Shown: in pieces, positions 3,288 through 14,210 of the stretch | Layout of the letters: every line of letters begins with the position of its first letter | Position numbering within the stretch: the stretch's first letter is position 1 | Source: Thalia democratica | Taxonomy: Eukaryota | Length of the DNA: 64,000 nt | Assembly: GCA_965202585.1 (NCBI GenBank) | Contig: OZ241831.1 | Coordinates: 13,392,001-13,456,000 of the forward strand | Direction: 5' to 3' | Program-made: the position numbers and the translations under genes | Notes under the pieces: model-generated | Told to the model about the DNA's origin: nothing | What the model saw: only the letters and a program-made list of their open reading frames with translations | Databases searched by the model: none

Positions 3288-3319
3288 AAACTGATGAAAT
3301 TAGAATGAAATATATATTG
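3288..3319 (+). ncRNA. minimal type I hammerhead ribozyme motif
   Basis: AAA-CTGATGA-aattagaat-GAAA-TATATA-TTG. Core is intact; stem I is weakened. Confidence 0.6.
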
Positions 3320-3418
3320 TTCTGAAAATTTGAGTCTTATGTATATTTTTTGAAAGAATTTATTAAATTGTCAAAAAATGTTTATTTTAAAATTGTTTAT
3401 TCATTTTTTTTGACTGAC

Positions 3419-4180
3419 ATGTATTTTTTTATAATGTATGTTTTTACTTTTTATGTTATTTATTCAAAGAAAAGTACACATTTTTAAATTTGAAAGATAC
3501 AATTTAGTTTTCTTTGTTTTATAGCATAAAATAAATAAAATAAGTGGTGTGTAGCTCGATGTCTGAAAGGGTATTCACTTGTTCCTTTAACCATATTTTT
3601 ATGTTTTAATTTCTTAAACGTGTTTAATAAACTTACTTAAAATTCAAAAGTCTGAAATTAAAATATTTGAGAAAAAATCATTAAGAGTCTATAAATTTGA
3701 AAAGTGTTTACCTATTACTTTTGTTTAATATTCAATAAAAAATTAGGAAACTACACAGAATGTACAAAGTTCCTTAAAGAAAGAAACCTCAAGATGACCA
3801 CAAACAGTCAGTGCAAACAAGAAATAAATCCAAAATATATCAAAATATTAGCATGGTGCGAAAAAAAATATTTTCCCAGCTACAGAAACTTCAATTTAAA
3901 CAACATGGATTTTGTTTTTACTGTAAAGAAACTAACACTAAAAAAGTTGTCAATGAAACCTTTTCATAAAAGTGATACCGACTACCTAAGTATATGTGTA
4001 ACGAAAATTCAAGAAACAACGAAAACTATAAATAATAAAAAGAAAAACGTCACTAAAAAAATAGTTCTATCGAATTCAACATACAAATTAAATGAAAAAA
4101 CAGTTAATCAGATAGTTTCCGTACTCTGTGTGGTTTACATCATAGTAATTTTAGTGTATGCATGGATAAAACTAAGAATA
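3419..4180 (+). CDS. putative signal-peptide exon (3419-3473) plus ectodomain/transmembrane exon (3747-4180); probable 5' part of the kinase gene
   Basis: Exon 3747-4180 is open for 144 codons, has 4 luminal Cys and a 19-aa hydrophobic helix IVSVLCVVYIIVILVYAWI followed by KLRI, and ends at a consensus GTGAGT donor (4181). Its phase-1 acceptor fits a candidate hydrophobic leader exon MYFFIMYVFTFYVIYSKK, which is less certain. Confidence 0.6.
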
Positions 4181-4622
4181 GTGAGTTAAATTGAATTGTT
4201 TTAAATAAAAAGTCTTTGATTTTCTAACGGACCTACAGTATAATTTTAAAAAATTTGTTATTTTACTAGTTAACTTGTTTTCTTCTTAGTTAATTTTAAA
4301 TGTTTTGTGTGATTATAAGACAAAAAAGATGCTTTGTTAAATAAATTTATTACGTTTTCTGGTACAAAAGTTATGTTTCACAAGTAGTAAAATATATACA
4401 ATGGTATATATTTATATAAGTTTTAAATTAATATATATTTTTTAAAAGGGATTAAAATGTGGTACAGCAAAATTTCAAATGAACCAAGTTAAAAAAAAGG
4501 TTTGTTTGTTTATTTGATTTAATTATTAACAATGAAAGTTTTTCAAAAACTTTTAAATAAGATCAGAACTTTTTTAAGATCTCTTGTATAAGACAGAGAT
4601 TACTTTTTTTTATATTTTCCAG

Positions 4623-4655
4623 GTGTCACTGAGATCAAATAGCCATAAAACTTAA
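4623..4655 (+). CDS. possible short terminal exon (VSLRSNSHKT*) giving a kinase-less membrane protein
   Basis: Strong pyrimidine tract plus TTCCAG acceptor at 4622, in phase 0 with the 4180 donor, with a stop after 10 codons. Confidence 0.35.
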   Translation: MSLRSNSHKT

Positions 4656-5029
4656 AGCTAAAAACAATAGTTTGTATACAGTACACCACAGTATATTTTT
4701 ACAAATGCTTAAATGAACAGCTACCTTTAAATTAAACAAAATTAAATGATTTTAAAGAAATGAAATTAAAACGATCAATATATCAAATTTCAAAAGTTAT
4801 TATAACTCAAATATAAAATTTGGTTTATGAGCATATGTTTTAAATGTTAAGTTTTATTAGTTTTATAGAAGTTACTAAACTTATTAAATTTGTTATCTGT
4901 CATGTTATTTAAGCAAAAAACATGTACTCATTAAAATAAATTCAATTGAGTAACAAAAAGAAACTTTTATTAATTTTCATTATTTGTTAAACATTATTTA
5001 TTTAAAACTATAACCTATTTCAAAAAAAG

Positions 5030-8000
5030 GATAAAGAAACAAAATTGAAAGTAAATCATGATGAGGAAAAAAATCAAACAGTAGAAAAAAACCAGGATGG
5101 GACAAAAAATCAAATTGTAGAAAGAAAACAGGATGGGACAAAAAATCAAATTGTAGAAAGAAAACAGGATGAGACAAAAAATCAAATTGTAGAAAGAAAA
5201 CAGGATGGGACAAAAAATCAAATTGTAGAAAGAAAACAGGATGAAACAAAAAGTCAAATTGTGGGAAATAAACAGGATGAGACAAAAAGTCAAATTGTGG
5301 GAAATAAACAGGAAGAGGAAAAAAATAAAACTGTAGAAAAAAATAAAGTCAAAGGAGTAGATCATCATGATCAAAAAAGTCAGGACACGAAAGTAGAGCA
5401 ACCGCTAACAATCCGAAGAATAGATGAATTTGATTTTGTGAAGAAACTTGGAAGAGTTTGTTTAATTATTTTATAAAACTATCTAGCTATTTAATTGTCT
5501 TTTTATATATCTTATTTGCTTTATAAACTTATTACATAAACGGAATTATTTTGTTGTTGTACTTAAATAAATTTTAGTGAAAACAAGATACACTTTATAT
5601 TAAACGATATGAAAAAATGGACTCATCACGTTTTTAATATATGTTAAAGTCTTTTGGTTGGTGAATAAATTATATCAAGTATTTACTGAATTGAAACTAA
5701 TTTATACTGGCATGCTTTAGCTATTAATTATTTGTTTTACAGTCGAAGTTTAACTTGCCTTATTAATTTAACAAAGTAAACATATATCTATATAAAAATT
5801 TTACAACTAAATAAAAGATTTATTATTTGATAATCATTTGCTAAACAGGGAGGATATGGTCAAGTACTTGAAGTTATTTACCGAAACGATAGGAAAAAAT
5901 ACGCAATAAAATTACAAAGCATTTCCGATGAGTGAGTCACAATTTTAACTAATTGATTTTGCTTTGTTAACTGAGAAAGAGGTGTTATAAAAGGGTGGGT
6001 GTCACTTTTGCATGAGCGTCACTTTTGCAGAAGGAGACACTTTTGCACGAGCGTCACTTTAGCTCAAAGGGACACTTTTGCACGGCGTCACTTTTGCACG
6101 CAAGATCACTTTTGTACGGTCGTCGCTTTAGCACGAGGGGACACTTTTGCACGGAGGGTCACTTTTGCAAGAGGAGACACTTTTGCACGGCCACATTTTT
6201 AATGATGACAATTTTTTACGGAAGCATTGTTACACAACGATGCTTTTGCACAACGTCACATTTATACGATGACATTTTTGCACAGCGAAATTTTAGCACG
6301 ATGACTTTTTACACAGAACATCAATTTTGCATGCAGGCCGATTAAAAGTTTTTTAGCTAGAACCAAATATGTAACATAAAAAAAACTTAAAACTAAAATT
6401 TTATAACATACCTATATTAAAGGCAAAAATGAAAGATTTAAAATCTTAAACAGTAAAAGTTAATGTTAGAAACAAACTAACGAAAAGATAAAATAAAATT
6501 ATTTATAAAAGATTCATACCAGGAAAAAAATAAATTAGAAACTAGGATAAAAAATACTTTAAATGTTATTAAATTGTTCTAGCTTATTTTTAATTTCAAT
6601 ACATTAATCAACAACTATGCCTTTTTATATATTTTACTGTAAGGTTACAAGTCTATTGTCCATCTGATGGACCTAGGCATCAAAACCTAGACCACTTAAA
6701 CTGAAAGACACATAAAGAAAAAATGAATTCAACACAAATGTTTATTTATTTAAACAACGGTAAAAACATAATTTGAAATAAAATTTATAGGTTAACGTAA
6801 AAAGCAAAATTTTAACCACAAACTTATACTTATTAACGATTTGATGTAGAACAGGGTTTCCCAAAGTGGGCCAAGCGGCCCCCTAGGGGGCCATGACAGA
6901 TACTCATGGGGAGTAAAGATACTCATGAGCAGTAAAGGAGCCTTGAAACTTACACTAGATATTCTTGAGTTGCAGATGAAGAGCAAAAAAAAAAAAGGTC
7001 TTATGTGTATTTTATGGTAGTTTAGAAATTTACACTAGATATTATTGAGTTGCAGATGAAGAGCAAAAAAAAAAAAGTAATCTTGTTGAAGGGGGCCATT
7101 GCTTTTTCAAATTCTTTAAAGGGGGCCATTTGCAAAAAAGTTTGGGAAACCCTGATGTAGAATGATCAACATAAAATATTTTAATGCATTGACTAACAAC
7201 AAAAATAAAAACTTAACGCTCAAAAGACACTAAAAATAGACTTGCCAGTTGACAAACTATTAAATACATTAAAAAATGACTGATCATTAATAGAGTAAAG
7301 GTGTTGCTAATAAAATTGAACTATAAACTAAATCTTAAAATTGAATCTACGGCTGGTAAAAATTACTTAGTAATTTTACTAACACAAATATAGTTCAGAT
7401 ACAACTTTTTTAACTCTAATCAAAGTTCTTTAAAATTTTCGCAAGAAACTAATTCATTGGAAGTTTGTTCCATATTTCAACTGACCAATAAAAACAAAAA
7501 TAATTCTGCCAAGCCTCATTATTGGAATATTGCAGCGGTTGAAGACTAATATGGTATATTTTCTTTGAACAGATTCTAAATGGTTATTATATTTTTTTAG
7601 TTATGTAGAACATATTGGTGTTTTATATTCTAACTTAGGACGAGTTTAAATGAGAAAAAAACTTATTAAGGCTGTTTATATCTGGAAACTGAAAGCTTTT
7701 TAAATGTTGAAAAGATTTAGTTTATGCAATACGGTAAACGTAAAAAAATGGTAATTCCATTAAAAATTTATAGCAATAAAAATTCAAGGTTCTCAAACAT
7801 TTTAGTTGAAGATAAGTTGATATTGTTTATTTTGAAAACAAAAGTAGAGATAGTAGTGTTTTTTTAATGTTTAGAACTTGACATTTACCAGGGTTTTAGT
7901 TTAATTTGATTTACTTAAGCTAATCGTAAATTATATCTAAGGAATATTGTAAAGTTGTGTTCGATTGGTAAAAATTTTTTGTCATCTGCGAAGAGGCTAA

Positions 8001-11000
8001 TGTTGCTGCTAAAATCAATTTCTGAAGCTATAACATTTAGAAACTCTTATAACTAACCAGACTGCTATAAATTTTGTATTGCAATAATAGTATATTTTTT
8101 TTCAAATGGAGAGACAGAGTCAAAATCTTTTACTGTGTATAGATAACTTAGTAAACATGTTGCTTAAAAATAATACCAACAAAGAAGATACCAATTTGTG
8201 AATTGCGGTACGTGATTATATTGTTGTACGTAAAACTTCAAATAAAAATTTTACATTAAAATTTCATTAAATACTACCACATTTTATTCATTTAAAACAA
8301 CTTGCGTTTAAACGCGAATATTATTCTAGTTGACAAAAAAAAGTTATATAATTTTTTTATTGAGAAAATAAAAAGTAGAAGCGTGCAAAAGTGAAGCTCC
8401 GTTTAAAATTGACTGATTGTTTAAAATTTTCGCAGTTTATAAGTATATCCGTGAAAACATAACGACGTTTGAAAGTGACGCTTTGCAAAAATTTCGCCAT
8501 GCAAATTTAACGTCGTGCAAAAGTTTTGACGTGTAAAAATGTCGCCGTGCAAAAGTGTCCCCTCGTGCTAAAATGACCACCGTGCAAAAGTGACGCCGTG
8601 CAAATGTGTCCCATTGTCTCGATAAGAGTACCCGACGTTGTGTCTAATGTCTCGTTAAGAATACCCTACGTGATGTTTATTGTAACCAATCTAAATTGCT
8701 AGGGGTAATTGCTTGGGATAGATATTTTTAGATAAGATAAATACATCTAAGATACTTAAAAGTCAACAAAAGTTTATTTACAAATATAAAATAGTCACAC
8801 GACACACTAACTAAAACTACAGTTGAACACAAGTAACAAGAAGTATCTTAAACTAAAGAAAACGAAGTATTTCAGACTTAAACTTAAACATTTTATAATA
8901 CAACATTTCGAGCTTTACCACACACCAATGATATTGCTACTGCCGAAACTGCTACTGCAAGTAAATGCAAGTAAAATTCCGTTTTATAAGCACTGAAACA
9001 AATGTAACTCCTAACAATAAAAAATGTTTGTTTTTTAAATACTGGAAGCACGTCACGAAATCTGCGTAAAACAATCTACAACATCCGCTTTTAAATAAAT
9101 TTGGAAAAGCTTGTTTTGAGAATGATGAAAAATGTTTTGGAAAAGCTTTTATTGTTACAAAAAATTACATATTTATTCACGAGCTTTAAAATATTAAAAT
9201 TGAAATGTTAGTTTCATTACACCATCGTGCAAAAGTGACCCTGCGTGCAAAAGTGTCCTCCGTGCTAAAGTGACGCTTGTGCAAAAGTGTCTTCGTGAAA
9301 AAGTGACGCTCGTGCAAAAAGAACCTGTTCCTGTTATAAAAATATCATTTATATACCTTTATGTTTTTTGTTTACAAGCGTTTTAAAAAAATTTCTACGG
9401 CAAAAAAAACATGTAGATGCCTCAGAGTTAAACGTTCTTTAAATTTTAAATAATTTTTTTTAACTAGTCAAAATATTTTTTACAAAATTAAGTTGTTAAA
9501 TGTTTATCAAGTAAAGTGGGAAACGCACAGTTTCCAACCGAACAAATCCGAGAACCGCTTACCAACCAAGGGTAAGGGTTAGGGGTAATAGTGATTGTAA
9601 TAAAGAGTTAAAAAAAAACAACAAATAGTTAAGGATAAACAGATTGGTTGGGAATTGTAATCGGGTTGGAATTGTTAGTGTACAAAGTAAACTTTTTTTC
9701 TATTTTCTGTACTTCTTCGATAGTTTTTTTTTAGCCTGAAACTTAAATCAAAATACATTTTTGTTACAACGCTTTCTTTAAGCTAGTTCTCCTTAGCAAA
9801 TATTTAAAATAAATTTATTTTCAAAGACGAATTTTGTTTAATTAAAATAAACAACACAGCATAGCACCAATGGTAAAACTTACCTAGAAAAAAACACTAA
9901 CAACCGTCGCGAAAAGTATTTCTGTTTGTTTTGATAAAAAATAACTTTCAAACTATTTTACACTCAACTCCTATACTTAAAAATTTAAACCAATTATTAA
10001 CTTTAAAATTTATTAAAAAAATTTATTAACTCTTTTTAGTTATGACAAAAATTTCGTTGAAGATGAAGTTGATAAAATTTCTAATTTCGGTCACCCTTCT
10101 ATAATTAGATATTTTGATGTATTTTTTGAAAAGTTGGATGGAGATCTCAAGTAGTTTAATGTAGCATTCATTATTAGTTTAAAAAAATAGTCAAGTTTAT
10201 TTTAATCTATATCTTAGACATTACACTAGTAACAGCTTAGTTTATAAATTAGTAATAAAAAAACATAAATAGTGTTTTTTCTTATGAAAATTGTACTCTT
10301 TTATGTTTTTGTAGTTTTAATTAACAAAGTAAATAAAAGCAAAAAACTTTTGTAGTTTTAACAGAAAAAGTAAAAAAAAAATCTTTCTAAAGATTTTTAT
10401 TTTGATTTTTTTCTAAAACTAATATATTATACAAATTTATTTCAGAAAAATCATTAAAAAGTGTCCTGGCATGGAGGATGCTGATTTAGAAAAACTAATC
10501 AGAGGAGCCGAGCTTAATAGTTAGTTATTTTACTCAAAATTTTTATACAAAATATTCCCTAGTTATTCATAAATTTTAGATCGTTGGTCTTCAACCTTTT
10601 TAAAAGCTGTGCACACTAAATTATTTGAAAAATATTCTGTGCACACTAGACTAAAGAAAATATCTAATAATTATTGAGGAATTTTTTTTTTAAATGTTTT
10701 AATATATGTAGTTTTTAATGTATTTTTGTATGCCTTTGTATATAAATAGCGGCTTAAGAACTCTTATTTTATGTTATAGTTATCTTTTTACCATATATAT
10801 ATATAGACAAAACAAGCGTCATATAAAAAAACATTTTTTCATCTTACTAAATTTTCTGTGCACAGTAGAAAAGTTTATATATTACTAGTTTGCACAGGTG
10901 CACTTTTTACGACCATTGGTGTAGATCAGGGTTTCCCAAAGTGGTCGGTATCGCCCCCTGGAGCGATTTTAGTAAGTCGGGGCGCAATAACTAGTAAGGG

Positions 11001-14000
11001 GCGTTTTAAAAATTTTGCGGAGTCATAAAATACTAGATATTCTTGAGTTGTACATGAAGAGAAAAAAAAAATTCTCATGTGTATTTATTGATAATTTTAA
11101 AACTTACACTAGATATTCTTGAGTTGCAGATGAATAGCGAAAAAAAGGTCTTAGGTGTTTTTAAATGGTAGTTTTTTGAGTAGTCTTGTTAGAAGGGGCC
11201 ATAGCCTTTTTAATTTTTTTAAAGGGGGCCATTTGTAAAAAGTTTAGGAAACCCTGGTTTAGATAATAACTGCTTAGCAAGCAACCTAGTTTATCGAGCT
11301 ACAAAAACAAACAACTTAACAAAATTTTATGTGGGTTCAAATAGCATAACATTTAAAAACAGATACAGTAACCATAAGCTAAGTTTTAACAAAGACATAA
11401 TACTGAACTATCAATTTACATATGGGAACTAAAAGACGCAAATAAAGACTACAATTTAAAATGGAAAATACTCTGCGGAACTAAGGAAAACAAAAAAAAA
11501 ACAACAAAATATGTAACTTAGGTAGATTAGAAAATTACATACAGTCACCTTTCGCGAAACTACGAAAATTGTGTCCACAGCAAAAGTGCGTAAATAAAAG
11601 AGAGAACGTAGCTAAACGAGATGTAACAAATAGTCCTACTATAATAGTTATTTTCTTTTAATGAATTTGATTATATACAATATGGTGACTTTTTCACTTT
11701 TTATTTGTTTACAAAATAGTTTTTATTCAAGTTGTACATATATGTGAAAATTTATATTTTTATTCTGAGCCTTTATATAACTTGCTTGTTTTGTTTTCGT
11801 TTAAGTATGATCGATTTAATAATTATAATTTTTTTAAACGAAAATACGCTTTAAAATAAAAGTAATCTAAACTTTATTCAGATCATATTCTTTGTAAGTT
11901 AGAAAAATACTTTGTAAGTTGTCGTCAAAAGTTTATCTAAAAGTTTTTTAAAAATATTAATTTCGATATTTGGTAAATTTAAGAGTGTAGTTAATTAAAT
12001 AAAATAATTTTAATTCCACTAAAATTGTTTTAATATGTCTTACAACTTTCAGCATCAGAAATATGCATCATCAGGATGGCGGTTGCCAATAGCGATGTGG
12101 CAACGTTTCTACAAGAAACAAGAGGGCAAAATGGATACACTCGTTTGAGCTTTAGGATGGTGGACCAGGTTTTTAGTTTCTTTCGACACATGAAGCTTTA
12201 TTTTATACTATATTGCAGCTTAAGTTTATGTAAGTCATTACAAACTTTCGACAAGATATTTTTGAATTTAATGTTATCTTAAAGGTAACGAAAACAAAGT
12301 AGTTTTCTTTAAAGGTTTTACTTATATTAATAATTTTCCATACTAAACTTAATAAAACTATATGGAACAATATTAATGAAATGACTCTAAAATTTTTATT
12401 ATAAGTTATAATGTTTTTTTAAATTTTACAGTAATATTTACAAAGTAAAATGAAGAAAATGGGAACTTTTTTTAAATTCAAAAATTTAAAATACGTCTGT
12501 AATAATGAAAAATCTAAGAGACAGCTAAACTTAATAGCTTTTATTTTAGACTGTTTTTTGATTTTTAGAAAGATCAATTAAGTTGTATATTTCTTTCTAT
12601 ATTTTTGTTTTTAAAATAATTTATTTCAAAATTTGTAGCATTAAAATTAATCCTTAAAAGCTAGGATAAAGTAAGTAAAGTAAAAGTAATTAAGCTATTG
12701 CTGTTTAGTAGTTAAACATAAAAAACTACAAGCTCCTTTAACAAAGACATGAAAGTTTGTAAGTTTTTTTTTTAATATCTTTTTTTCTACATTGTAAGTG
12801 TTTCTAAACTGATTATAAGTATTTATTGTATAATGATCAGAAATAATATTTGATAGTTTAATTGTTTTCGCCTTTGAAAAAAGTTGATAAAATATAAAGA
12901 TAAAGTAATTTTATTTTGTTAAACAATAAGTTATCAAAATATACTATTAAAATAATAAGTTAGACTTTTTATGTAAAAAGTACTTAATTTGCTTTTTTTT
13001 TTAGATTTTCGATGCCTTGCAATATCTGCACGAGGAGCATATGATGGTCCATTGTGATATAACACCCAACAACATACTTTTAACAATGGACCATCATATC
13101 AAGCTCACAGATTTCGGTCTTTCTAAAAGTTCAAGTAAGACTTTGCTAACGTCGTTTAAACAAGTTATTTGCTAAACATACAAACTTTAGAAATATTTTA
13201 GGTTAATAAGTTTAGAGAATTTATTACACTATTATGTTAAACTTGTATCCCAAGAAGTCTATTTAAACTTTTTTAAATGTTATAACATTTAGACTTATCA
13301 TTAGATGCATTAAGTTCATTTTATAACGGTTTATGTAATGGATAATTAATCTAACTAAACGTCAATAAACACTAGACTTATAAATAAAAATAATTACCAG
13401 TGGAACATTCGAGTGACACTAGAGGTAAGGTCGTAGTAGAGTCGCGTTCTTGGCACCAGACATTGGATTTCACCGCTCCAGAACAAGTAATTGCGTTTTT
13501 GTGTTTAAATAGATTGTTATTTTTGTTTAATAGCTAATCTAACAATATAAAAAATAAATCTAGCTGTATAATTGTTAGTTAAATTAATTAAAATCAACTT
13601 CTGACCAATTAAATTAATTTTTCGAGTGTGAGAAAATTTTATTTTTATCAATATTTGTTATTTTTTATATCATTTGGTTAAAGTAAATTCTGTTCTAAGT
13701 CATTTGGGTCATTTTTTTATGAACTAATTGATAAAATTTCATATGTCGAAAATTAACTTGGTCAACATTGTTTGTTTTTAATTAGATAAAGAAGGATGAT
13801 CTAGTTAAAACTGGCTGGTTTCGCACACTAAACTAGATTTAGAATTATTTTGCTTGAAACAAAAATTTTTTTTTTACCTTGCAGGGGTCAAGAATCTTCA
13901 CGCAAGCGGTTGATGTGTACTCATCGACCCGGGTAGCCGTTTTGATCTTCGCCAGACCTTTAGATATTTCAAAAGTAAACTTGTATGTCAGATGCAAGAA

Positions 14001-14210
14001 GTACCCAACAAGTTTGAAAGCTCCCAGCAAAGCTCCACTTGTTAGTTACTTTAAACGCTTTGTAACGTGTTCATTTATTAAAACTTTGGTTTGTTTTAGC
14101 TATCAGTCGTTCAAAAGGGGCTGGCTTTTGGTGAGAAAGATCGGCCGCTTGCAGGTGAAATGAAGGAAATGCTCAGGGAAGCGAAAACTAGAATTTCCTT
14201 AAACAACTGA
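5030..14210 (+). CDS. divergent Ser/Thr protein kinase, eIF2-alpha kinase (PERK/PKR)-like, non-RD
   Basis: Exons 5030-5455, 5849-5931, 10040-10150, 10446-10519, 12053-12168, 13005-13134, 13401-13486, 13885-14040 and 14100-14210, all GT-AG with matching phases. Motifs in order: [20 protein letters not shown], alpha[12 protein letters not shown], short insert, [40 protein letters not shown]. The 5' acceptor at 5029 is inferred. Confidence 0.88.
5060..5347 (+). repeat. coding 36-bp (12-aa) tandem repeat x8, D[G/E]TK[N/S]QIV[ER/GN]KQ
   Basis: 36-nt period visible in the first kinase exon. The antisense ORFs 4998..5285 and 5015..5401 are by-products. Confidence 0.95.
5996..6335 (+). repeat. array of CACTTTTGCACG-type subterminal motifs (end of a non-autonomous element family)
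   Basis: More than 10 degenerate copies of gtcacttttgcacg. The same family occurs at about 8380-8612(-), 9225-9322(-), 21562-22314, 35455-35640, 36925-37090 and 41565-41912. Confidence 0.8.
6852..7154. mobile_element. hAT (Buster/Charlie-type) MITE
   Basis: TIR CAGGGTTTCCCAAA / TTTGGGAAACCCTG, perfect 8-bp TSD ATGTAGAA (nnnTAnnn). Confidence 0.93.
7450..8200 (-). mobile_element. decayed CR1/L2-like LINE reverse transcriptase fragment in a kinase intron
   Basis: Minus strand LFADD (7981-7995) and downstream RPKLEY.TPI.S...LESVQRKYT, typical of LINE RT C-termini; multiple stops. Confidence 0.85.
10582..10918. mobile_element. decayed hAT MITE
   Basis: Degenerate TIR CGTTGGTCTTCAA / TTACGACCATTG, flanked by TTTTAGAT and GTGTAGAT. 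Confidence 0.55.
10927..11256. mobile_element. hAT (Buster-type) MITE, same family as 6852
   Basis: TIR CAGGGTTTCC / GGAAACCCTG; TSD GTGTAGAT / GTTTAGAT (1 mismatch). Confidence 0.88.

Follow-up and report, generated by a model that had tools for sequence, protein, structure and literature searches.

Positions 3419 to 14,210 of the Thalia democratica DNA presented above raise the question of whether the exons found there form one gene and, if they do, what kind of receptor that gene encodes. An original prediction, made from the letters alone, had proposed a single-pass receptor kinase with a small Cys-rich ectodomain and a divergent kinase resembling PERK. We analyzed the locus within its window, the whole stretch of 64,000 nucleotides (13,392,001-13,456,000 of the contig that we call C7; ~25% GC) in an assembly of 802 Mb. 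Positions 3419-14210 of the + strand very probably hold one intact gene, coding for a single-pass membrane protein that carries a lectin-shaped outer domain and an inner kinase of the translation-stress type. The more specific reading, a single gene for a type I single-pass membrane protein with a lectin-like head and an eIF2α-kinase-like domain, belonging to a large family, is the one that we favor, with modest confidence.

Gene model and kinase class

The gene model was built by three-frame translation and splice-site inspection. Eleven exons on the + strand, all separated by GT-AG introns, splice into a frame of 587 codons (1.76 kb) that ends at a TGA at 14208-14210. Because stops are frequent in every frame of this AT-rich genome, an open frame of 1.76 kb assembled from eleven pieces is far beyond what chance would produce. 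Residues 1-18 of the predicted protein are hydrophobic and signal-like, residues 164-290 form a linker rich in K, Q, E and D with eight 12-aa repeats, and residues 291-587 make up the kinase domain. Other kinase exons were not found in the 64-kb window with a kinase hidden Markov model (HMM) built here, and no other gene was found between exons 2 and 3.

The kinase was compared exon by exon and by family profiles, not as a whole spliced domain. Exon 8 matches the Pfam family PF00069 with an E value of 3.2e-12 (46.8 bits, for a cut-off of 31.7 bits), and our kinase HMM also marks exons 4, 5 and 11. As single sequences, exons 4, 7, 9 and 10 found no match in the PDB. Exon 5 alone places three PERK chains at the top of its PDB matches, at a non-significant E value of ~0.5. 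A profile of seven paralog αC-β4 exons (A4), searched against 177,635 PDB sequences, brings this likeness to significance: PERK (3), GCN2 (5), HRI (1) and PKR (5) fill 14 of the 16 first places, with E values from 3e-7 for PERK to 1.4e-3. NEK1 is the other kinase ranked among these eIF2α kinases, and WNK, NEK2 and Wee1 follow at 5e-3 or worse. The resemblance of the N-lobe to PERK, pointed out in the original prediction, is thus significant at the family level (A4, E 3e-7), and the catalytic segment leans the same way. A profile of 13 paralog catalytic segments corresponding to exon 8 (A3) puts full-length GCN2 (8t7t) first, with 77 bits and an E value of 4.4e-21, and GCN2 is also the best single-domain PDB match of exon 8 itself. 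At 52 bits, the remaining GCN2 entries score level with MAP2K7, MEK1 and CDK6, which makes the catalytic segment only a mild indicator of class. The glycine-loop exon, in which G, G, A and K are invariant across paralogs, gives a profile that finds PKR and PERK among the first few PDB kinase types, weakly (E 0.01-0.06) and without diagnostic value. Finally, 27 residues are inserted between the β4 and β5 strands (between ...VFFEK and ICIIRMAV), most of them encoded by exon 6. A β4-β5 insert is a hallmark of eIF2α kinases.

The strongest alternative is that the domain is a generic, divergent kinase of the "Other" group, whose N-lobe likeness is convergent or common to PEK, WEE and NEK kinases and which has no special tie to the integrated stress response. 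Such a kinase would explain why NEK1, NEK2, WNK and Wee1 also appear in the αC-β4 list, why MAP2K7, MEK1 and CDK6 come close behind GCN2 for the catalytic segment, where the other GCN2 entries do no better than MEK1, and why the glycine-loop profile is not diagnostic; it would also accommodate a C-lobe that, in the very part used by eIF2α kinases to dock eIF2α, matches nothing. We nevertheless consider this alternative doubtful, since the eIF2α kinases occupy all but two of the first 16 places with E values 100-10,000 times better than those of WNK, NEK2 and Wee1, since two independent exons (αC-β4 and catalytic) point the same way, and since the β4-β5 insert is typical of the PEK group, which is formed by PERK, GCN2, HRI and PKR. 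DYRK/CLK, TTK and Wee1 were also considered as a source of the HCD/HSD catalytic loop found in this family, and were rejected: the N-lobe profile ranks them below the eIF2α kinases or not at all. We regard it as fairly likely that the family is PEK-like with a private, divergent C-lobe.

One of the named eIF2α kinases has an ortholog elsewhere in the same genome. An intronless HRI (EIF2AK1) ortholog of 561 aa lies at C2:21914937-21916685 (-); EIF2AK1 proteins are its best named matches, and the Pfam domain specific to HRI is present. It is ~30% identical to the gene model in both lobes, and its β4-β5 insert reaches ~115 residues. In databases, the HRI ortholog comes closest to a Tara Oceans marine metagenome contig (97%), followed by a JGI-hosted environmental contig from sample 3300018950 (78%). 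The catalytic loop of this HRI reads HRDVSTRN, which also lacks the loop Lys but, like the loop of tyrosine kinases, has Arg two positions further on. Another long open frame that looks like a kinase, of 424 aa, was observed at C2:21950389, 35 kb from the HRI ortholog.

Catalytic state, variation and the family

Most of the residues expected of an active kinase are in place: GRGGYG, the Lys of YAIK, the αC Glu, the Asp and Asn of the catalytic loop, DFG, APE, the Asp of subdomain IX and the Arg of subdomain XI. The motifs HCDITPNN, DFGL and PEQ (the last as APEQ) singled out by the original prediction can all be read in the sequence. In HCDITPNN, the Arg of HRD is replaced by Cys and the catalytic-loop Lys by Thr, which leaves the set of catalytic residues incomplete. 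The replacement of the Arg (the non-RD state) is real and recurs as HCD, HSD or HGD in about a dozen paralogs. The loop Lys, on the other hand, is kept in the nearest paralog (HCDIKPSN), whose exon 8 is 65% identical. The original prediction had overlooked the loss of this Lys, because of which the kinase may well be weakly active or a pseudokinase; for this copy, low activity, or service as a scaffold or allosteric partner, would be as likely as normal catalysis.

We looked for natural variation in contigs from two other individuals, read over 3300-5999, which cover exons 1-4 except for the core of the repeats (5123-5283). Differences between individuals amount to ~1.9% in introns and ~1.1% in coding sequence. 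The coding changes in exons 1-3 comprise two synonymous and six nonsynonymous substitutions (K17Q, A54V, E57A, E135I, I163R and E176K), and neither stops nor frameshifts were found in exons 2-4 of these two individuals. All three runs read Ala (GCA) at 3861, where the reference has a Glu (Glu57, GAA) that is invariant among paralogs and stands beside the third Cys. The T-run that follows the first ATG (3423) has one or two additional T in the two other individuals; because the T-run after the ATG at 3419 differs in length, only the ATG at 3434 is safely in frame. The proposal that the receptor is fast-evolving finds thin support in the six nonsynonymous against two synonymous changes of exons 1-3, but diversifying selection and neutrality are not separable with so few changes. 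A receptor head that evolves fast and a relaxation of constraint could each produce this pattern, the counts being too small to decide.

The gene has many relatives in the genome. Our scans scored 150 exon-8-like matches and 66 αC-β4-like matches, which pair on the same strand, 2-14 kb apart, at no fewer than ~25 loci. HRI is one of these loci, and PERK and GCN2 are presumably also among them. About 12 paralog exons have the same boundaries as exon 8. The paralogs that had been suggested as a check on the original prediction are found, with at least ~25 similar loci in this genome, some of them clearly dead. The family appears to be specific to this lineage, as had been proposed, no homolog having been found elsewhere in searches that were badly limited. 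As far as their sequences tell, members of the family combine a PEK-like kinase type with variable Cys-rich ectodomains. The two parts of the gene group differently. Its ectodomain is recognizably similar only to those of two genes, at C7:13.32 Mb and C1:38.68 Mb, which share its four Cys and are ordinary RD kinases (HRDVK), whereas in the catalytic exon it shares 65% and 51% identity with non-RD paralogs and only 31-33% with the two RD-type genes. This conflict may reflect an exchange of ectodomain exons, or the divergence of the other ectodomains beyond recognition.

Some loci of the family have visibly degenerated. A tandem cluster at C1:31.15-31.21 Mb has dead catalytic loops (HCNVNPET), partly with SGFG instead of DFG, and near-identical copies of this cluster lie on contig C112, which is perhaps an uncollapsed haplotype. 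Ectodomain fragments of the C4:57.25 Mb type, broken by stops, were seen at C1:93.77-94.82, C2:18.95-18.98 and C4:57.32 Mb; they suggest a trail of decayed family copies.

Could the gene described here be on the same path? In such a case the gene model would be right and the copy without function: it would look intact, yet belong to a family in turnover and be on its way to becoming a pseudogene. The replacement of a loop Lys that its nearest paralog keeps, the existence of plainly dead members (HCNVNPET, SGFG) and of many ectodomain-like fragments with stops, the six nonsynonymous against two synonymous changes of exons 1-3, E57A and the length difference of the T-run at the first ATG are all what one would expect of it. 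Against this, at 25% GC an open reading frame of 1.76 kb over 11 exons would hardly last by chance with no stop and with every splice site unbroken, no disabling variant is found in the two other individuals, all the other catalytic residues are kept, and the polymorphism counts are too small to tell neutrality from diversifying selection on the receptor head. We judge a decaying copy unlikely and retain the reading of an intact family member.

The outer domain and its probable join to the kinase

The extracellular part of the predicted protein totals ~120 aa. A domain of ~90 aa (residues 20-108, encoded by 3749-4015) holds four Cys (24, 41, 56 and 102), which do not vary in three paralogs, and the sequon NYT, and is followed by a Lys/Thr-rich stalk (4016-4111) that carries the sequons NVT and NST. 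A candidate transmembrane (TM) helix (residues 141-159, encoded by 4112-4168) comes next, with a mean hydropathy of 2.9 over 19 aa, then KLRI. Because the hydrophobic segment is followed by KLR, as in a stop-transfer signal, the protein would adopt a type I topology. A 36-nt repeat at 5053-5343 (8.1 copies, 89% matches with TRF) encodes the 12-aa repeats. These repeats had been described as a stalk; they are there, but their position after the TM helix and KLR would make them part of a cytosolic juxtamembrane linker instead.

AlphaFold2, run with three paralogs, predicts a small α/β domain with the order helix, strand, helix and four strands, at a mean pLDDT of 72 for the whole of exon 2 and 81 for the ectodomain alone (pTM 0.68). 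Exhaustive structural alignment returned Z≥2 for only 70 of 48,161 chains, and C-type lectin-like domains (CTLDs) account for ~40 of the top 50. The matches are weak (Z 3-4.4, root-mean-square deviation (rmsd) of 3-4 Å over 70-86 residues). Tetranectin (1htn) is the best of them, with a Z of 4.4 and an rmsd of 3.2 over 74 aa for the exon-2 model and a Z of 4.0 for the ectodomain-only model, and the other CTLD neighbors include PLA2R, SPL-2, CEL-I, DEC-205, LLT1, CD302, Mincle, CD72, Ly49, the tunicate lectin TC14 and invasin. Helix 1 contains the first Cys and the final strand the last one, at what we take to be the position of the canonical CTLD disulfide. The motifs WIGL, EPN, QPD and WND are not in the sequence, and the long loop region is not present. 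Given that neither these motifs, nor a long loop, nor a Lectin_C match was found, we do not expect the domain to bind sugars in the way of C-type lectins. On the strength of these models, the ectodomain would rather probably be a minimal CTLD-like fold without the long loop or the sugar-binding motifs. The original prediction had missed this lectin-like fold, weak but recognizable in the models, and had suggested AlphaFold and Foldseek as a check: the first did yield a confident fold (pLDDT 81), but the second gave no neighbors, and the CTLD likeness came from the exhaustive aligner.

This outer domain might instead face the lumen of the endoplasmic reticulum (ER) or another endomembrane compartment, the protein being a stress sensor like PERK whose Cys domain reports the folding or redox state. 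Topology and kinase class would be the same as in PERK, and there are trypanosomatid membrane eIF2α kinases whose lumenal domains are unrelated and which reside in endosomes (PMC4450062). A lectin-like fold, three sequons for N-glycosylation and a large family whose ectodomains vary and are poorly conserved fit recognition at the cell surface better, and make the lumenal location improbable.

Are the outer domain and the kinase encoded by one gene? As had been noticed, exon 2 (3747-4180), which holds the TM helix, closes in phase 0 at GTGAGT, and position 5030 opens in phase 0 after an AG. The kinase part likewise has no early in-frame ATG; its first Met is residue 375, inside the β4-β5 insert, and the kinase part cannot start on its own because no in-frame Met precedes this residue. 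Comparison with relatives adds weight to the join. In 6/6 members examined, the kinase exons are preceded on their strand, at a distance of 1-5 kb, by a Cys-rich ectodomain exon (plus TM) or open frame; four paralogs have a Cys-rich ectodomain and TM exon at that place, and a fifth has a weakly similar open frame of 203 aa. Two are clear paralogs of exon 2, at C7:13,320,237-13,320,659 (75 kb upstream) and C1:38,681,316-38,681,729 (-), with the four Cys invariant, the same phases (1 in, 0 out), a Thr-rich stalk and a TM helix, and our kinase HMM detects kinase exons downstream on the same strand at both loci. Paralogs at C7:10.2 Mb, C4:57.25 Mb and C8:64.33 Mb have a different upstream Cys-rich exon or open frame, and a TM helix with basic residues follows the Cys-rich region in 2/3 of them, namely the two whose DNA was examined there. 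At C7:10.2 Mb the splice phases match as well: the TM exon leaves phase 0, a charged linker exon ends in ...FIKNLGE/gt in phase 0, and the glycine-loop exon leaves phase 2 at GA/gtgagt. The architecture of ectodomain, TM helix and kinase in one gene, as originally proposed, therefore recurs in relatives with matching phases at C7:10.2 Mb, and the 4180-to-5030 join, read from this comparison, is quite probable. The notion that exons 1-2 encode a small membrane protein and the rest an independent cytosolic kinase with another 5′ exon, the in-frame join being a coincidence, draws on a join without RNA support and on the stop that exon 2 would meet two codons past its donor were the intron retained, which would yield a plausible small TM protein, but it is highly improbable given the Cys-rich and TM open frames 1-5 kb upstream of same-strand kinase exons in every member examined, the compatible phases here and at C7:10.2 Mb, the kinase part devoid of a start codon before residue 375 and the lack of any other kinase or gene between the two parts.

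Several observations weigh against the reading of a single lectin-headed, eIF2α-kinase-like receptor gene. No RNA run was found for the locus, for which only three DNA-type runs from two individuals are available. The C-lobe exon covering αF-αG and its family profile match no PDB chain. This region docks eIF2α in the known kinases; because the C-lobe matches no solved kinase, descent from eIF2α kinases rests on about half of the domain. The loss of the loop Lys, a near-neutral 6:2 ratio, E57A and the T-run at the first ATG are compatible with relaxed constraint. As for the fold of the ectodomain, the lectin match is weak (Z≤4.4), Foldseek against the PDB (twice) and against the AlphaFold Database clusters returned no neighbor, Pfam gave no Lectin_C match at E≤1, and the ESM Atlas feature search gave no usable match.

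A further point against is that no member of the family was recovered from any other organism, by searches whose power to show one was badly limited. The homolog search of protein databases with exon 2 found nothing. Exon 8 against protein representatives listed 150 matches that are generic and mostly multi-kinase, none of them more than 29% identical to the spliced model. A metagenome scan with the exon-8 family profile gave 80 loci, the best-scoring and highest-identity ones being AGC-type or generic, with no family member and no spliced transcript among them. Our literature search found no paper describing such a receptor family, and a 2018 survey of eIF2α kinase evolution mentions no tunicate and no such family (PMC5851622).

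The exons of the model differ in how securely they are placed (Table 1). Exon 1 is the least secure: its donor is poor and a second in-frame ATG occurs at 3434, but it is the sole candidate with an ATG, a hydrophobic stretch and a phase-1 GT in the 3 kb upstream of exon 2, to which it joins through an AGA codon. Exon 6 is not itself supported by homology; it is the only exon found that connects the phase at the end of exon 5 with the frame of exon 7, which is fixed by homology. The tail encoded by exon 11 is similar to that of the paralog 75 kb upstream.

Table 1. Exons of the gene model (coordinates are those of the window)
Exon	Position	Strand	Content
1	3419..3473	+	Candidate start; hydrophobic signal-like N-terminus MYFFIMYVFTFYVIYSKK; donor GTACAC; leaves phase 1
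2	3747..4180	+	Ectodomain and TM; enters in phase 1; donor GTGAGT; leaves phase 0
3	5030..5455	+	Juxtamembrane linker, eight 12-aa repeats, start of the kinase domain; phase 0 in, phase 0 out
4	5849..5931	+	Glycine loop (G-GYG), β3 Lys (YAIK)
5	10040..10132	+	αC Glu and β4; eIF2α-kinase-type signature
6	10446..10519	+	24/27 residues of the β4-β5 insert; first in-frame Met of the kinase part
7	12053..12168	+	β5, hinge, αD, start of αE; paralog exon at C7:10.2 Mb aligns
8	13005..13134	+	Catalytic loop HCDITPNN (13050-13073) and DFG; Pfam Pkinase match
9	13401..13486	+	Activation segment up to APEQ; paralogs end in YMAPEQ
10	13885..14040	+	αF-αG, family-specific C-lobe; aligns with paralogs
11	14100..14210	+	αH-αI, subdomain XI Arg (KDRP), C-terminal tail, stop; kinase HMM positions 245-272

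Repetitive DNA was noted in and around the gene. A tandem, satellite-like array lies upstream of it at 549-1250 and is open in several frames on both strands (peptides of the GLEVIGLEMI and NPITSNPI types). Intron 4 holds, at 5998-9326, an element of ~2.5-3.3 kb bounded by inverted arrays of 17/35-nt subrepeats of the CACTTTTGCACG type (5998-6216 versus 8519-8597 and 9225-9326). Nested in it at 6841-7151 is an element of ~320 bp resembling a miniature inverted-repeat transposable element, with the ends GGGTTTCCCAAAGTGG and GGGAAACC, and a second copy, 80-85% identical, occurs in intron 6 at 10916-11254. These insertions account for the length of introns 4 and 6.

Possible mechanism and comparison with known systems

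The design would be that of a receptor-like Ser/Thr kinase derived from an eIF2α-kinase-type domain and fitted with a lectin-like head, its class being read from part of the domain. For such a receptor we infer a surface location, an external ligand, activation by dimerization and a substrate in translational control. A ligand or glycan bound outside would cluster the receptor, and clustering would bring the kinase domains into a back-to-back dimer of the kind that activates PKR and PERK. Phosphorylation of the activation loop should not be needed, because this copy is non-RD (HCD). With the loop Lys replaced by Thr, its own phosphotransfer would probably be weak, and its main part in signaling could be that of a scaffold, or of an allosteric partner for paralogs with intact catalysis.

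To our knowledge, four eIF2α kinases drive the integrated stress response of animals, PERK alone among them being bound to a membrane, and animal receptor Ser/Thr kinases are essentially limited to the TGF-β receptor type. A family with an eIF2α-kinase-like domain behind lectin-like, variable ectodomains would be a third build of membrane receptor kinase in animals, and would hint that recognition outside the cell is linked directly to translational control in the closest invertebrate relatives of vertebrates. One can go further and propose that, in a pelagic tunicate, the wiring of variable lectin-like ectodomains to eIF2α-kinase-type domains has given rise to a whole class of receptors for innate immunity or for the environment; we see this as quite unlikely in so strong a form. 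Were it true, recognition at the membrane would shut down or reprogram translation without an adaptor cascade, as a surface-bound counterpart of PKR, and dead or half-dead members, such as the Lys-less copy described here, would act as regulatory partners. The intact, non-RD, Lys-less and fully dead loops gathered in one family would also offer a natural series for studying the origin of non-RD kinases and pseudokinases.

Among known systems, PERK (EIF2AK3) offers the closest parallel. Both are predicted or known to be type I proteins with an N-terminal sensor, one TM helix and a C-terminal cytosolic kinase, and they share the αC-β4 signature (HPxIVRYFxxWxE type), for which PERK is the best PDB match, a β4-β5 insert and TMD...DFGL. 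PERK has a lumenal sensor of ~500 aa, an insert of ~200 aa and the loop HRDLKP, whereas the protein described here has a lectin-like domain of ~90 aa with a stalk, an insert of 27 aa, HCDITPNN, and a C-lobe αF-αG region that is not recognizably similar. PERK is also a single conserved gene, unlike this one, which is one of at least ~25 loci. Judged from its sequence, the gene is not a PERK ortholog, the large lumenal domain and the long insert both being missing.

The trypanosomatid kinases TcK2 and TbeIF2K2 show that a membrane eIF2α kinase can carry an outer or lumenal domain unrelated to that of PERK; they are found outside the ER, in endosomes or at the flagellar pocket (PMC4450062). The title of the same report describes trypanosomatid eIF2α kinase 2 as heme-regulated. 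The likeness is one of description only, and these protist kinases differ in being encoded by a single-copy gene, without a large family, and in having an outer domain that this report does not describe as lectin-like. PKR (EIF2AK2) and fish PKZ resemble the present design in that a pathogen-sensing module has been swapped onto an eIF2α kinase type, and PKR is among the PDB matches obtained here. PKR is reported to evolve fast (PMC13712846). Unlike the protein described here, PKR and PKZ are cytosolic, their sensors bind nucleic acids and their kinases keep the canonical HRD and Lys.

Plant FLS2, EFR and XA21, together with the plant C-type-lectin receptor kinases, combine an ectodomain, a TM segment and a Ser/Thr-type kinase lacking the HRD Arg in large lineage-specific families. 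The analogy with plant non-RD receptor kinases, drawn by the original prediction, stands for the design but fails for the kinase group: the plant kinases belong to the IRAK/Pelle (TKL) group rather than to PEK, with unrelated ectodomains and ancestry, and the best PDB matches here are eIF2α kinases, with neither IRAK nor plant receptor-like kinase chains among the best PDB matches of any exon profile. The outer domain itself is best compared with compact CTLDs such as those of NK-cell receptors (LLT1, CD72, Ly49), invasin and tetranectin, with which the predicted fold shares two helices packed on a small antiparallel sheet, but from which it differs by its size of only ~90 aa and by lacking a Lectin_C match, the WIGL, EPN and WND motifs and the long loop. 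Finally, an animal precedent for fusing a lectin ectodomain to a cytosolic kinase is Sweet Tooth of Hydra, a receptor tyrosine kinase with several canonical C-type lectin domains, whereas the Thalia gene would join a single minimal lectin-like domain to a PEK-like kinase of the Ser/Thr type.

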